A stretch of DNA of 63,512 nt, counting the filler, from Choristocarpus tenellus KU-1152 (taxonomy: Eukaryota > Protista > Phaeophyceae), in the NCBI GenBank assembly GCA_964200185.2. It is 13 parts of 13 records of this genome, joined end to end, with 100 filler letters (N's around TTAATTAATTAA, not from the genome) between each part and the next. Parts side by side here need not be neighbours in the genome. Positions count along the whole stretch, not along the records: positions 19,254 to 22,966 come from CAXNAD020018351.1; 12 more parts are not named here. The stretch is one strand, 5' to 3'. The notes under the pieces are model-generated. The model had not been told where the DNA came from. It saw only the letters and a program-made list of their open reading frames with translations, and made no database searches. Shown in pieces: positions 4,599-23,152 of this stretch. The position numbers and the translations under genes are program-made. The stretch's first letter is position 1. Each line of letters starts with the position of its first letter.

Positions 4599-4853
4599 TT
4601 GAAACCAAAACTGGTTGGGGTTTTGGCCAATCAACACTGCACAACTCAACACTCGACGACCCAAGTTGACATCACAAGAGGTGCTGACAGAAAGTCTAGA
4701 GGGGCTGCCAGGCGTGTACGCTGAGATTATCAAAGAGCAAGCCTGCCAACTCTTGGTTTGAAATCCAGTGCTTGTGAAACTGTTTGAGACTTTTCCCATA
4801 TTGTTCATAGTTGATGGGTCGACCCCATACGTTACACTAGGGTTGTGTTGCTC
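4599..4853 (-). CDS. Candidate internal exon of an unknown protein gene
   Basis: CAG acceptor, 85 open codons (EQHNPSVTYGVDPSTM...NPNQFWFQ), GTACGT donor. Another candidate exon lies at 6599-6702 (-). No recognisable domain. Confidence 0.45.
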
Positions 4854-7431
4854 CTGGTCACATTGATGAGTGAGGTAAGAGGTGCAGGGAGGGATGGGGG
4901 TGTGTGCAATATAGGCTGTGAATTAACACGGGTGCTAAACGGTTCCTAAAGGTTGAATACATTTCCCCCTTTTTCGCTAGTGTTGGTGACAGTCAACGGC
5001 AGACTGCTAGTTGAACAGTTGTTCCCCTGTCCAACTGATTGCCCATTTTGTATTATGTGTACATTCATGTCGTCAGTGAACACTACTAATAATTGTAACA
5101 ATATCAGTGCTATAGTACACCACATGATAAGTAAGTAATGTCTGTGACGAGAGAGGTGAGGACTTCTAGTACTGAGCCAAAGTAAACGAGAGGTACTCAG
5201 ATCTTGGCCGTTTTGCATTTGAAGTAGGTTTTCTAATTTTCCCCATTCATTCATATTTCTATCGATGAAGTTCAAACCTTGACTTGAGAACGTTTCTCTG
5301 TTCAAAAAATTTCGGACAGATCTTGGAAATTATTCTACACGCATCAATCAGTAAAAAAGAGCCGAATTTTGCACTTCTTTGTCAGCATCTTTAAAATGTC
5401 ACTCTCGTTTACTTTGACTCTCTACACAAATGGATGGACACATATTACTCCAATATGTGTAAGTGACTAACCTCTTACGAGTTTAGAGGAGAAACAATGT
5501 GTCGTAATATGTACATTTGGCACCACTATAATTTCAATGCACAGGACACCACTGTTCAAGACATCAACAACGGACAGTGTTCATGGGAGAAGCATTATTA
5601 CTATAGAACTGCTCCAACCAGGTACTTGGTAACCAGTCATGTTGCCAGACTCTTCTGGCTGTAATGATGATTACCACATGTATTTTTCTACCTTCAATGA
5701 AGGGTGAATGTTCCAATAACCAGACAAGAAATCGCAACTTCCAGAACAAGGTTATCTTGGTTTTTGTATTATCTCCAAATATGGATGGCGAAGAGTGCTC
5801 ACAGTGGAATTGGCACAGATAATTACGCAAACCTTGATCATGGTATACACCTGCCATACCAATGCCAAGCAGCACACTGTCTCTCAGCAAGAAAAAAGAC
5901 AACACATCCTATACCAACAATTTTTTGTCATTGAAGGTTACACTTCTCTCAAAGACACCTTCATTTGCTCTTCAAAATCAACAGGCAAGCCCATGGCAGG
6001 TAATTATCAGGGTTGATAGGATAACAGAGCAATGACCCCCCTTTCATAAGTGCACTTGCGTCTCTTGTAGGGGTTTGGAGCTAGAGTCAGAAAGAATACA
6101 GACAAAAATGTTTCGGATGCAATAATCTGTCCTATTCATTCAAAAGCTGCAGGCCGAGCGTGTAAGCCCTACAGTGACAACATAACCCGTCTGGGTAGAA
6201 GATAAAAAATAGACATACCCAAGAAAACAACGGGCGGAACCGAGGCTATTTCATTCCCAGATTGATTTGTACGATTGGTACTGGAGACGACCATTGTCAG
6301 CAACACTCACATCCATTTGTACTTCATCAGAGCATATATACCGTCCACGAGCCAGGCAACTATCAACACTAATCAAGACCACCTCGACAGATATTGAAAT
6401 TGGTAACACAGTGGCTCTTTGTATTTAGTTGGTCCCAACCAACCGAAAATGGGTAGGAATGAAATACCAAATTCATAGGGCGATGTATCCTCAATCATCC
6501 TTCCTCCTGACCTACCCAGGCCATACTCTCTCCTGCATTTCTTGCTTCAACCACTAGTTCTATGACTCGACAGAAAAGGCTCAGAGCAGCTTACATACCC
6601 AGGAAGACTGGTGTTCTCTTCATATCAATTCCCCTTGAGTAAATCCAAGGAGGTACCTCAATGTAGCAAAGTGGGATGATACGCATCAAGGATGCATCAT
6701 TGCTACGAAAAGAAAGAAACACAAATTTGGCACTCCACCCTCTTCCATCTGTTATTCCACTCTCATCACTCAGCATCCTTCACACTCCTGGGCTATCTAC
6801 CTTGTGCTGTGGACCCCCTCATTGTGCTTCTTATCACCCTATTTACTCACCCCACTCCTGTCCCTCCTACCAAACACTTTATCAGCCTTTTATCTCTTAC
6901 CATGAAGAGCTCCAAACAACACAGCACAGCTACCAGTTCCACACTAACTCCTTGCACTCACAAACAGAGCATGCTCCAACGCATGCTGCCACTGCACATG
7001 AATCAAATGCAAACAGCAACACTTCCAGATGCAGCACACATCGATCCCCATCTCAAATGTGTGTGCTCATACTTTCCTTCCTCCCCACCCATCTCCAGCA
7101 CTAGTCCTTTCACCTCATCACTATAAATAGCGTGTCATCTCCCTCGACATACCAGTCAGACTTCCCCCAATTGACCACTTACACCCATCTAAGGTTTTCC
7201 TGCACCCCTGTGTTTGATCATACCCTGGAGCTCACTCATACCCTCTTACCAGAAGGGATTCCTTGTAATATAGTTAACTCAGTTCCCAGTTGCTGGCAAA
7301 ATAGGCATAGCAAAACCAGAGGTATACAACTTGTTAGCCAGTGTTGCAACAATAACCAACTTGTAGCTAAAACCAACTGAAAGCAAAGACACCATCGTTT
7401 CATCTGCTTTAAGTAGGACACTAGTGTCTGC

Positions 7432-19362: not shown

Positions 19363-20776
19363 TTGGCTGTGGGTGGACTTGGTTGGGACACTGTGACCAT
19401 CAATCAGGGCAATATTCGACACTCCCCCAAAAAATGGCACCCAGCTTGAGCTGCAGCTCTCCCAACGGACACAGGGTTGTATATCTTGAGCTGGATATTG
19501 TACTGTACCCCCACGGCGGCCAATAAAATAATAAATGAATAATGGGCCAGTTCTTTTCTGTAGCTTTTGAGGTGTTACTCCAATGGGATGAGGTCTTGAG
19601 CGTTGCTTCCTCTATCTGTTCTGAAATTTACAAACAAAAACAAAAAAAATACCAAAAAATTACTCGAAAGAAGATGTTTGGACCTTCCACGTTCGAATCT
19701 TACATTTTCGAACAAACTTGTGAAAAAAAAATTCGTGAACATTAGGAAATGCATTGATTCCTATCACTCCATCGTTTGGCACTAGAACTCGAAAAATTCG
19801 AGCTGAGAGTTTTCCGTTGACTCTGGTCAATGTTCCTTCTCAGTCGGAAGAGCATTTGTTTAGTGGATAATGCTCAGTGTAGGGCTGCTGTGACTAAGAG
19901 TTTTAGTCAATAATTACCCCATTTGTGATCACTTTTGGAGCGCGAAATTGTACTAGTAATTTATTCCCCCAAAAAATCTAGATAGAAAGGACTATCGGGA
20001 AAACATTACACGTACATACACATGTGCACTTTGAAGACAGTTTAATGGAGAGATCAAGAAGAAACATGTATTCATACATGCATAATACATAATACATAAT
20101 ACATACATACATAAACATATACATGTATGTATGTATGTAAGTATGACTTGCCCGTAAAGTGCTAAGCACCTCTTGCACGTACGTAGCTTGCTCATCATTT
20201 GTCACTCTGAGCTGATTTTTCTACTTTGGTCCGACTTGAGTTACTCTCGACCATGTCTGCTCCAATCTTTCCCTTCCTTTTCGTTTTGGAGAGTACTAAC
20301 CCTAACTCTAACCCGAACTAACTTCTTCAGGCAGTTTCAAAATCAACATTTCAGTAGTAATGCGCAACGATAGCCTTAACCCAAATCCCCTATTTCCTCC
20401 TGAAGTCAAAGTTTCTACCTTAGACTCAGGCAGTAACAGCTGTTCATGCCCACTGTCACTGTCATTTCAAACTATCGCTGCACAGCCAAATTGTATCATG
20501 TTTTGGTATTGAGAGCTGGAAAATACTATCAAGCGCTAACCCTAACCCTTGCTTCATGCTGCACATTGTTGGCGAGGGTTCTAAAGGGTATAAAAGGATA
20601 AAAATATGTATAATATGACCCTGCAAGGCAAATTCTCCCTGGAGTGAGTGCACCAATGTTCCACTCATCCTTACTGCTTCCGTGTTTTTTTTCTGGTTCT
20701 CGAAAAAAAAAAAATTGAATCCTACCAACATAAACTAATAAACTCAAAACACACAACTCCCTTTCGCGCCATGCAG

Positions 20777-20862
20777 ATGAAGGTAGACCTCAAGACAGAG
20801 ATGCAACAATATCAGGAGGCACAGTCGGAGTTCGACAACCTTGATGAGGGTCACCATAGCAG
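20777..20862 (+). CDS. Exon of an unknown, probably coiled-coil protein (host of the intronic LTR element)
   Basis: CAG...GTCAGT bounded MKVDLKTEMQQYQEAQSEFDNLDEGHHS. The phase 2 end is compatible with exon 22561-22672. Confidence 0.6.
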
Positions 20863-20964
20863 GTCAGTGGTCCCGAGCAGAAGGGGAGACTGATGTAAAC
20901 TGTCCTTTGTTCCTAACCCCATTTGATCCATGCAGTCATAATTCATCTCTCCCTCTGCAATGGG

Positions 20965-22314
20965 ATATCGCTGGCTCTTCACATCCTATTATATAATCCA
21001 CCGGTGGTGTCTATAGTGTATCAGTAGCACTATCTACGAACACTCTCCCTTGCTGTGCAGACACTATGCACCCTAAAAATCTACTTCTCCGAAATTAGAG
21101 AAAAACAAACTTCTGCTATTTCTCTGAAAAACAATGCAACAAATATACCCTAACATCAATGTTGGCGTTGGGTCTGTGTAGGTACAAAAAAAAACAGTCA
21201 TCAATCTAATCATCTGCCCTACTGCACCCTTACGCGAAAACATCTTCAGGTACTTTCTCCTGCTGGTCCTTAGCAATGCAATGTTGCATCTCCCACAATC
21301 CATGAAATGACAGGGTCCTTACAAATACATATAGAACATTCCCCCTTGTGACTTGGTCCCCTCCAGACATCATCTGCGGAGGACCTATGTTGGCAATGGA
21401 CGTTGAATCGTCAAGTTCTCCAAGCGATGAAGGGGACCAAGTCACAAGGGGCAATGTTCTCTGTCACCGAAGTAAGAGTTTCTGATGAACCCTTCCAACC
21501 TGTCCAGTCTCGAACTGATGTCTTCCATCTCTCGATTCGGTTGGGGGAGAAGGAGTTGTGGTCGAGACTGGACAGGTTGGAAGGGTTCACCAGAAACTCT
21601 TACTTCGGTGACAGAGAACATTACCCCTTGTGACTTGGTCCCCTTCATCGCTCGGAGAACTTGACGATTCAACGTCCACTGCCCATATTTATATATGTAT
21701 ATATGGGTCCTCTGCAGATGATGTCTGAACCATGCAGAGCGGTTTCGCAGTCGTGAACACCCAGGGTATCCTGGGCGCTTACCGCAAAGGCGTCAAAGTC
21801 TTCGCCCAGTTTCCCAGCAAATATCGGCAGAGTTGTTATCTTGGTCGTGTTGCTGGAAGACATCTTGAATACTATTACCGCTCACAAACAGCCCCGTCGA
21901 TCAGCACAACATCTCGGGAATAATCGGTCCGCTACGTAGCGTGTTGAAATATTCCACACTGGACCCGCAGCTTTGGTGCTTTAATTGAGGACGGTGAATA
22001 GCTTGGTGTAGATGTGCAATGTTTGTATTACAAAGGGGCTTGTGGTCTCGATTATGTTGGCTGAATAGGTGGGTGAGACAAGCCTAAACAATCATTACTA
22101 TTCCTATAGTGTGGGGTTTGCAATCGCCGACACTATTTTACTATGAATCACTTATTTATTTGTCTTAAGTATGGTAAGTGTATCTTGAACATAGCACTCA
22201 AATCAATGGACTCTATGATGAGTCAGGACATATGATATATGTCACTGGCTCTCTATCCTATTACATAATCCACCAGTGGTGTCTATAGTGTATCAGCAGC
22301 ACCATTTACGAACA
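20965..22314 (-). mobile_element. Non-autonomous copia-type LTR element (family D): 5' LTR 22314-21942, gag remnant, fold-back hairpin, PPT, truncated 3' LTR
   Basis: 373-bp TG...CA LTR. Gag-like start MSSSNTTKITTLPIFAGKLGEDFDAFAVSAQDTLGVHDC from 21863. PPT AGGGAGAG at 21050-21043, then a second LTR start at 21042 traceable for ~75 bp. No pol. Confidence 0.85.
21364..21727. repeat. Long inverted repeat / candidate hairpin RNA
   Basis: 122-nt arms 21392-21513 and 21562-21683 (4 mismatches), 48-nt loop, outer 25-nt stem 21364-21388/21703-21727. Confidence 0.95.
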
Positions 22315-22560
22315 CGATTCACTTACCATGCTCAACAGCAATGTCCTTCCTCCACATTCATCCACCAATGAACCCCGTATACCTCTGTAGTAGTCCTCCC
22401 CATAGCCCCATCATCTTCAACCTTGTGTAATTCCTGTAGAGCCACTGATCTAATGCAGCATGTACCGGATGACAAGGAACAGTCCCTCCGAGGTACCGCT
22501 CTCTTGTCAAAATGACCCGCGCTAGACGCCCCTTTTGGTGTTGCAATACCAACAAACTAG

Positions 22561-22672
22561 GGATGGAGCAGAAGCCCGTATGAGTGCACTACTCGATGTC
22601 ATAGAGGGTAGAAGGACGACACTTCTTATGGCCAGAGAGGACGTGGAGAAAACCCGCAAGGATATCAAAAAG
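22561..22672 (+). CDS. Next exon of the unknown coiled-coil protein
   Basis: TAG...GTGAAA bounded (R)DGAEARMSALLDVIEGRRTTLLMAREDVEKTRKDIKK. Confidence 0.6.
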
Positions 22673-22865
22673 GTGAAACACCCAATTCCTATGGAATATC
22701 AGATACTCATTGCAGTAAATGAACGGGGTTCACGTTTTTCAACTCACAAAGTCACTTTTTCAATTCCTGTTGATGCCACCAACACACACACAAAGTCACT
22801 GCCTCTTCTCAACGACTTCTTCACCTGTTTTCAGTCACTGCCCTGCAGAGGCAGTATTTGGATCA

Positions 22866-22905
22866 GGCTCAAAGTATCTGGGGGGGGGGGGGGGGGGGGG
22901 GGGCC
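22866..22905. mobile_element. MITE family A terminus near contig end
   Basis: GGCTCAAAGTATCT followed by a long G-run. Similar terminal fragments lie at 4003-4025, 10204-10224, 27259-27295, 27396-27417 and 36711-36743. Confidence 0.75.
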
Positions 22906-23152
22906 CAAGAGAGGGGGGGACCCCCCGTCGAACCCCCACCCCCACAAACCTTGGTTTTGTGGTTTTNNNNNNNNNNNNNNNNNNNNNNNNNNNNNNNNNN
23001 NNNNNNNNNNTTAATTAATTAANNNNNNNNNNNNNNNNNNNNNNNNNNNNNNNNNNNNNNNNNNNNGCCTCTTCATTCTTAAATTGTTTCTTCTACAGAA
23101 TCTTCTTTTACACATGAATAAAAGCATATTCTTAACAACGTCCAAAGAATAT

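Follow-up and report, generated by a model that had tools for sequence, protein, structure and literature searches.

Fold-back rearrangements of the DUP-INV-DUP type arise by replicative template switching, strand-transfer products of reverse transcriptase are a related class, and hairpin structures of the kind considered here are common in eukaryotic genomes. Inverted duplication is also said to lie at the origin of miRNA genes, in a model that reportedly goes back to Allen in 2004. The locus that we describe is a near-perfect hairpin, 364 nt in span, inside a broken LTR retrotransposon that is itself located within a probable intron in the window (the whole 63,512-nt stretch of Choristocarpus tenellus KU-1152 DNA that was analysed). 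Like these rearrangements, it has an inverted copy set off by a short spacer, a short direct duplication along its border and breakpoints that fall on a common short motif; it differs from them in its scale of hundreds of base pairs and in the joining of at least three sequence sources. Since such structures are common in eukaryotic genomes, the locus should be given modest weight until its expression is demonstrated.

In maize, Mu killer is an inverted duplication of part of the transposon MuDR; its ~4-kb hairpin comprises the transposase gene and TIR of this DNA transposon and matches the active element, and it has been demonstrated to give a read-through transcript and siRNAs and to silence heritably (PMC3440606). 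The present locus resembles Mu killer in being a partial inverted duplication of a transposon whose hairpin could be transcribed from a neighbouring promoter. It differs in that the stem is only ~150 bp long and belongs to an LTR remnant, in that about half of this stem matches nothing else in the genome, and in that the locus is known from DNA alone. Rearranged endogenous pararetroviruses in tomato are likewise remnants of reverse-transcribing elements with inverted repeats on a micro-scale, often intronic and otherwise intergenic, for which hairpin transcripts and siRNAs have been both proposed and shown (PMC9868043). In that system 22-nt siRNAs and transcripts were mapped and the arms are recognisably viral, whereas the arms of the present hairpin have no recognised coding origin.

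In Ectocarpus, 75% of miRNAs lie in genes, mostly in introns, the mean foldback length is 170 nt and no miRNA has been traced to a transposon (PMC4513859); the sequence-only reading of the present locus was thus accurate, for this alga, in stating that brown-algal miRNAs come from long, often intronic hairpins. Proto-miRNA or TE-MIR loci (PMC3086885) are similar to the present one in that a long perfect hairpin formed from duplicated or transposon sequence is postulated to be the first step in the birth of a miRNA; the present stem is much longer than those of annotated miRNA precursors, the long brown-algal ones included (PMC4513859). Finally, the LTR palindromes of maize Sireviruses (copia) are hairpin-forming sequences of LTR retroelements that, like the present one, could attract or produce siRNAs, but they are short, lie in a cis-region of the LTR and are conserved in the family (PMC4728375), whereas the present hairpin is internal, long and apparently confined to one copy of the element.

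The retroelement remnant and its putative intron

Contigs from two sequencing runs of the same organism (library type unrecorded) were aligned to positions 20700-22700; a third run, from another organism, yielded no reads for the region. The features recognised around the hairpin are the following.

20771..20862, plus strand: putative host exon with an open frame and a GT donor at 20863 (from the ORF and the sequence)
20863..22560, plus strand: putative intron of 1698 nt, GT...AG, containing the retroelement remnant (from the sequence)
20965..21042, minus strand: stump of the 3' LTR, ~78 nt, corresponding to the LTR start in the element sense and forming the element end (aligns to 22239-22315)
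21043..21051, minus strand: polypurine tract AAGGGAGAG, adjoining the TG start of the 3' LTR
21044..21363, minus strand: 3' internal segment common to a high-copy family, ending in a copy of a 30-nt motif (from contig depth and joints)
21728..21941, minus strand: locus-specific segment from the hairpin to the complete LTR, of single-copy depth, with 52% GC vs ~40% in the LTR and with most of a 64-codon ORF
21942..22314, minus strand: complete LTR of 373 bp with TG...CA ends, the 5' LTR in the element sense (from loose contig ends, depth and termini)
22561..22671, plus strand: putative host exon 2 with an open frame and a GT donor at 22672 (from the ORF and the sequence)

The borders of the LTR were read from the behaviour of the contigs. 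Forty-eight of them turn to unrelated sequence just past 21042, and diverse loose contig ends are found exactly outside 21942 and 21042. Since the contigs diverge at these two positions, which carry TG and CA (TG at 21942-21943, CA at 22313-22314 and 21041-21042), the LTR is 373 bp long. The second LTR is truncated: the left copy equals the last 78 nt of the LTR on the plus strand, lies in the same (direct) orientation as the complete one and aligns (as 20965-21043) to 22239-22315 over 79 nt with small indels (87%), or over 61 nt without gaps (92%). The LTR is thus longer than the ~60 nt compared in the sequence-only reading.

On the minus strand, AAGGGAGAG is located directly before the LTR start, the canonical position of a polypurine tract; the orientation of the element is therefore minus, and it lies antisense to the putative host gene. 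In contigs that come from other copies, a full LTR is joined directly to the 21044-21363 segment (joints 22253>20982 and 22251>21032), from which it follows that this segment is the usual 3' internal end of the family. The remnant thus has two LTRs in direct orientation, TG...CA ends with unrelated, diverse flanks in other copies and a polypurine tract at the second LTR, as befits an LTR retrotransposon, and the earlier description of a pol-less LTR element placed antisense in a putative intron is borne out. No pol was found, and a Pfam search of eight ORFs revealed no domain in any of them; the assignment of the element to the copia superfamily is therefore without support.

Inside 21941, beside the complete LTR, no TGG-initiated tRNA primer-binding site was found; a 12-nt palindrome, CGCTACGTAGCG, occupies the place where such a site is expected, and a tRNA scan of the piece returned no tRNA gene with which a primer site could be compared. 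Because no primer-binding site was found, the reading of the remnant as a single element is not secure. The 5-bp flanks of the complete LTR taken alone (TAGCG vs CGATT) do not match, and the 3' LTR has lost its outer end.

The length of the intron, 1698 nt, equals 3 x 566, and the frames of both flanking exons therefore coincide. This agrees with the phase-compatible host exons proposed earlier, which have compatible frames across a GT...AG interval whose splicing is putative. When the exons were searched alone against PDB, there was no meaningful match for 20771-20862, and 22561-22671 returned 0 matches.

Structure and sequence sources of the hairpin

The hairpin and the motif at its edge are made up of the following parts, which are given without strand.

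21364..21727: whole hairpin, i.e. outer stem, inner arms and loop (from the repeat finder, folding and arm alignment)
21333..21362: 30-nt motif, direct copy 1, equal to 21615-21644 and inverted relative to 21431-21460
21387..21513: left inner arm, 127 nt, 95% complementary to the right arm (repeat finder)
21514..21561: spacer or loop, 48 nt, which also belongs to a mid-copy repeat
21562..21688: right inner arm, partner of the left arm, 127 nt, 95% (repeat finder)
21689..21702: AT-rich, microsatellite-like insertion in the right arm only, which shifts the minus-strand frame

The inverted repeat of 122 bp with 4 mismatches, its 48-nt loop and the 25-bp outer stem are all present as first described. 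The 4 mismatches were found in the alignment of the arms over 21392-21513 (122 bp), and the outer stem (21364-21388 and 21703-21727, 25 nt) was recovered at 92% by the repeat finder. According to the arm alignment, an 18-nt AT-rich insertion is carried by the right arm alone, and the left arm has 2 extra nucleotides. The 30-nt direct repeat at the edge of the hairpin was also recovered by the repeat finder (21333-21365 and 21615-21647, 94%, with an exact core of 21 nt), and the amino-acid strings quoted in the sequence-only reading are correct translations.

Both strands were folded, and each forms a single long stem of about -305 kcal/mol with a z score of about -30. The minimum free energy is -303.0 kcal/mol on the plus strand and -306.3 kcal/mol on the minus strand, a difference of just 3 kcal/mol, and the corresponding z scores are -34 and -29; shuffled sequences average ~-126 kcal/mol, and 0 of 100 shuffles folded equally well.

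All four mismatched pairs of the inner stem (21396/21679, 21422/21653, 21452/21623 and 21485/21590) are A.C on the plus strand and G.U on the minus strand. The outer stem contributes 1-2 further transition mismatches, which are G.U on the plus strand. The claim that mismatches become G:U pairs on the minus strand thus holds for the inner stem (4/4) but is reduced to 4 of 5-6 sites once the outer stem is counted, for which the two-sided p is at least 0.37 (0.375 for 4/5). The arms have 5 differences in 147 positions, compared with 5 in 61 for the LTRs; the difference is not significant (Fisher p = 0.16), and the stem can no longer be called younger than the LTRs on this ground. We see no evidence of selection on the stem in either comparison (p at least 0.37 for the G.U bias and p = 0.16 for the arms vs the LTRs).

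Two further observations concern these comparisons. The LTR pieces are perhaps not a matched pair. Inner mismatches that are exclusively G.U on the minus strand, together with an ORF that runs uninterrupted through the left arm, could reflect constraint.

The depth of the aligned contigs is given below as multiples of single-copy sequence (the single-copy flanks have a depth of ~12-26, and summed contig depth is not equal to true copy number).

20968-21101: ~1000-3000x single copy
21102-21369: ~100-200x single copy
21370-21436: 1x single copy
21437-21637: ~20-60x single copy
21638-21905: 1x single copy
21942-22314: ~70-2000x single copy, both ends being the most abundant

For the segment 21044-21363, the depth is about 100-800x single copy through bin 21303-21369. 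In raw values, it is ~4800-5000 across 21236-21369, ~26 at 21370-21436, 478-1230 across 21437-21637 and ~12 at 21638-21704. The left arm accordingly has a single-copy outer part (to ~21436) and an inner part of ~75 bp (~21440-21513) that is found in a repeat with tens of copies. Repetition elsewhere is restricted to the ~75 bp nearest the loop in each arm and the loop itself, both present in tens of copies, and to the 30-nt motif, which occurs in hundreds; at an identity of at least 90%, the outermost ~70-95 bp of either arm is single-copy.

When depth is considered by hairpin part, it amounts to 890 in the left inner arm, 478 in the right one and 1230 in the loop, so that both arms combined (890 + 478) have about the depth of the spacer and not double that depth. 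Contigs with family variants span 21479-21528, i.e. the left arm and the spacer together, and in the mid-copy repeat the loop is contiguous with the left-arm orientation; no such variants are listed at the mirrored positions of the right arm. Past 21635, the other copies depart from the right arm into a common, different continuation, which is seen in six contigs with loose ends. Since the summed depth of the arms is close to that of the loop, the other copies probably contain one arm and the spacer, without the fold-back. Tentatively, the fold-back itself would thus appear to be confined to the present locus.

Both the high-copy 3' segment and, for 21 nt of its length, the mid-copy repeat contain the 30-nt motif, which is present at every junction. 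On the plus strand, the order from the left is the family segment, the 30-nt motif, the left arm (outer unique part, inverted motif, inner part) and the spacer; these are followed by the right arm, which begins with its inner part, continues with the 30-nt motif and ends in a unique outer part that contains the AT insertion, and then by the unique segment and the LTR.

Much of the stem had been read as gag-derived. The 64-codon ORF in question is located at 21669-21863 on the minus strand; it begins 78 nt inside the LTR and is correctly oriented. Its position and orientation relative to the LTR constitute the sole positive argument for gag. Shuffling of its 282-nt context yields an ORF as long as this in 11% of cases. 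There was no Pfam match to copia-type gag (Retrotran_gag_2/3, UBN2) at E<=1, and an exhaustive HMMER search with the 64-aa ORF against 1.84 billion (1.84e9) representatives matched one protein. This match, P0001, a bacterial cadherin-repeat protein of 2517 aa, is spurious, its score being built up from weak matches to eleven identical repeats. In the ESM Atlas, all neighbours score below 0.9; the cluster at rank 15 (score 0.85), in which 20% of members have Retrotran_gag_3, is a lead, not evidence. Given the outcome of the Pfam search, the lack of a true homologue and the frequency of such ORFs among shuffles, the "gag" label is not supported.

Among the organism's own contigs, neither the ORF region nor the outer portion of either arm exceeds single-copy depth at an identity of at least 90%. 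They are therefore not gag of an abundant young family, and a more diverged, low-copy autonomous relative is a possible source. Likewise, the expectation that the arms would match gag of the family finds no support, since repetition at this identity concerns no more than the loop, the 30-nt motif and the inner parts of the arms. Other copies of the family were also sought in collections that do not include this genome, where protein searches with the hairpin-spanning ORF and with the ORF of the high-copy segment were blank, an exact look-up of ten ORFs returned no match, and metagenome scans with the LTR core and with the arm/spacer junction were blank.

Origin of the fold-back

On balance, we hold that the hairpin is probably a template-switch fold-back scar in the decayed remnant of a non-autonomous LTR retrotransposon, neutral and with an incidental potential for hairpin siRNAs. 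The remnant would consist of one complete 373-bp LTR, ~900 bp of internal sequence without pol, the polypurine tract and the 78-nt stump of a second LTR. In a fairly young local duplication, ~150 bp of it would have been copied in inverted orientation across the 48-nt spacer, and the 30-nt motif would remain as a direct repeat at the edge of the inverted duplication.

We infer the donor sequences and the order of events from the depth, the joints and the loose ends of short contigs. The mosaic has three sources: the outer halves of the arms consist of sequence confined to this locus, the inner halves, like the spacer, belong to the repeat present in tens of copies, and the 30-nt motif is common to the high-copy 3' internal segment of the family. 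The most economical origin would be serial template switching at this common motif, with one switch onto the complementary strand, possibly during reverse transcription of co-packaged RNAs or else during replication or repair. One copy cannot distinguish reverse transcriptase from replication or repair, nor the original arm from its duplicate. The earlier proposal of a DUP-INV-DUP scar can be kept as far as the local inverted duplication with its 30-nt direct repeat is concerned, but not for the origin of the stem from gag. As it stands, the locus would illustrate how template switching builds long hairpins from pieces of retroelements.

A MITE or foldback DNA transposon was also considered and rejected. 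No target-site duplication flanks the hairpin at 21364-21727, and it is therefore not an inserted foldback transposon; its outer arms, moreover, are single-copy.

Competing readings of the locus

When a near-perfect intramolecular duplex of ~150 bp lies in an intron that is transcribed, or follows an LTR promoter, its RNA is a substrate for Dicer and siRNAs result. At the present locus, read-through of host pre-mRNA (plus strand) or transcription from the LTR (minus strand) would give a duplex RNA of ~150 bp, which as a Dicer substrate would be expected to yield siRNAs instead of a single miRNA. Targets elsewhere in the genome would be available only to siRNAs derived from the 30-nt motif or the inner stem.

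The sequence-only reading had gone further and seen in the locus a Mu-killer-like trans-silencer or a nascent miRNA gene, the stem being maintained for silencing of the family, which we consider unlikely. The stem is indeed long and near-perfect on either strand, two promoters are plausible (that of the gene with the putative host intron and the complete LTR upstream), sequence matching the inner stem and the 30-nt motif is found in tens to hundreds of other genomic copies, and each of the four mismatches in the inner stem is a G.U pair on the minus strand. Precedents are provided by Mu killer (PMC3440606) and by the intronic pararetroviral inverted repeats of tomato (PMC9868043), and Ectocarpus miRNAs are mainly intronic with long foldbacks (PMC4513859). 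On the other hand, about half of the stem lacks a target in trans, given that both the presumed gag and the outermost ~70-95 bp of either arm are single-copy at an identity of at least 90%; neither Pfam nor HMMER revealed homology to any gag, and the G.U bias disappears once the outer stem is counted. A foldback of 364 nt with a perfect stem of ~150 bp is also far, in length and in completeness of pairing, from a miRNA precursor, the mean for Ectocarpus being 170 nt and none of the miRNAs there being transposon-derived (PMC4513859).

The plant MIR families retrieved from Rfam, MIR1027 (55.2 bits vs a gathering score of 150) and MIR7725 (53.6 vs 77), are sub-threshold, generic long-hairpin matches, which counts against the miRNA reading, and membership in a described miRNA precursor family was rejected since all matches are below the gathering score. 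A near-perfect stem of ~150 bp would suit hairpin siRNA loci better than a miRNA gene. Taken together, a role as a functioning trans-silencer or as a miRNA gene in the making is doubtful to improbable for this locus. We give little credence to the fullest form of this reading, according to which the fold-back in one copy of an abundant LTR family would now be an intron-hosted hairpin-RNA gene whose siRNAs, derived mainly from the 30-nt common motif and the inner stem, restrain the family in trans, or else the first step towards a transposon-derived miRNA. If small RNAs do arise, this would be a natural case in which one rearranged copy of a retroelement starts the silencing of its relatives, and a trans-silencer would be to retrotransposons what Mu killer is to MuDR, in a lineage that has been little studied. 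It would be notable there, as TE-derived hairpin loci are not known to have been described in that lineage; in Ectocarpus, none of the miRNAs was traced to a transposon (PMC4513859).

It is equally unlikely, in our judgement, that two unrelated fragments of the same family flank ordinary intron DNA with a local palindrome. The fragments would be the LTR at 21942-22314 and the 3' internal piece with the LTR stump at 20965-21363, both in the same orientation. Such an arrangement would account for the 575 bp between them (21364-21941), which are locus-specific save for the inner hairpin and have 52% GC vs 40-42%, for the 12-nt palindrome that replaces a primer-binding site after the complete LTR, and for the 8% difference between the LTR pieces over 61 ungapped nucleotides. 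But the two pieces have a common orientation and are spaced as one would expect for a small element with an internal deletion, the complete LTR lacks a 5-bp target-site duplication of its own (TAGCG vs CGATT) and so is no clean solo LTR, and the 30-nt motif of the family segment recurs within the hairpin, linking the hairpin to the element.

A hairpin that is a conserved, intrinsic structure of the family, such as a cis-acting palindrome or packaging signal, is a reading that we regard as very improbable. Inner arms and spacer do recur in tens of copies, and the palindromes of copia-type Sireviruses attract siRNAs (PMC4728375). Were the structure common to the family, the depth of the spacer would not be matched by that of the arms summed but would be half of it; furthermore, contigs that carry variants span the left arm and the spacer only, the other copies diverge from the right arm at 21635 and the outer arms are unique to the locus.

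The same contigs bear on the correctness of the assembly. In two runs, an exact contig of 341 nt covers 21606-21946 and joins the right arm to the unique flank, and a separate contig spans the left outer arm without differences. At 21479, 21490 and 21528, every aligned contig carries another letter; none of them thus shows the inner left arm and loop in the form present at the locus, and the exact continuity from arm through loop to arm rests on the assembly. The earlier argument that the arm mismatches speak against a fold-back artefact was strengthened by the finding of arm-specific sequence in short-read contigs as well. Thus, although palindromes with short spacers are a known class of artefact and the window's own version of the inner arm and loop is missing from the short-read contigs, a chimeric fold-back long read is extremely improbable, given that 4-6 substitutions, together with an 18-nt insertion and an indel of 2 nt, set the arms apart, that sequence specific to each arm is present in short-read contigs, with the right arm joined exactly to unique flank, and that the spacer is a genomic repeat and no adapter. 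One contig crosses the putative exon-intron boundary unbroken and with flat depth, and looks like one derived from DNA.

Abundance of the LTR family

The minus-strand LTR-retrotransposon remnant of this locus comprises the following parts:
21942-22314 (−), complete LTR of 373 bp
21044-21363, high-copy 3′ internal segment
20965-21042 (−), LTR stump of 78 nt

As judged by contig depth, the LTR family (20968-21042, 21942-22314) is highly abundant in organism A, the source of two contig runs covering 20700-22700. Its termini reach ~2000-3000 times single-copy contig depth there, and subfamily variants are numerous among the contigs. For organism B, the different organism from which the third run was derived, sampling 2% (1.9 Gb) of one DNA run from the same study yielded zero reads of the family.

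The segment adjoining the complete LTR

The G+C content of the locus-specific segment 21728-21941 is 52%, versus 40-42% in the LTR and the 3′ internal segment, and overlapping ORFs of 63-64 codons are present on both of its strands. This segment may derive from a host fragment that was captured, or from an element lineage that has diverged. Directly inside the complete LTR, at the position expected for a primer-binding site, 21930-21941 form a perfect 12-nt palindrome, CGCTACGTAGCG.

A palindrome competing with the hairpin

Repeat finding revealed a second palindrome, at 21333-21460, that competes with the main hairpin (21364-21727). The copy of the 30-nt motif at 21333-21365 pairs with the inverted left-arm copy at 21428-21460 (arms of 33 nt, 94%, spacer of 62 nt), and with this pairing a transcript crossing the region could adopt an alternative local fold.

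Simple repeats and the piece end

Two short interstitial telomere-like CTAACC(C) repeats, at 20296-20319 and 20536-20549 (240 nt apart), are located upstream of the putative exon 20771-20862 (+). The paired (CATA)n and (ATGT)n microsatellites at 20073-20145 make up a separate small palindrome, whose weak, sub-threshold Rfam matches to AT-rich animal mir families look like composition artefacts. Positions 22880-22903 are 24 consecutive G, and from there to the piece end at 22966 the sequence is G/C-rich and of low complexity; the G run may not be genomic but a poly-G artefact of reads at a contig end.
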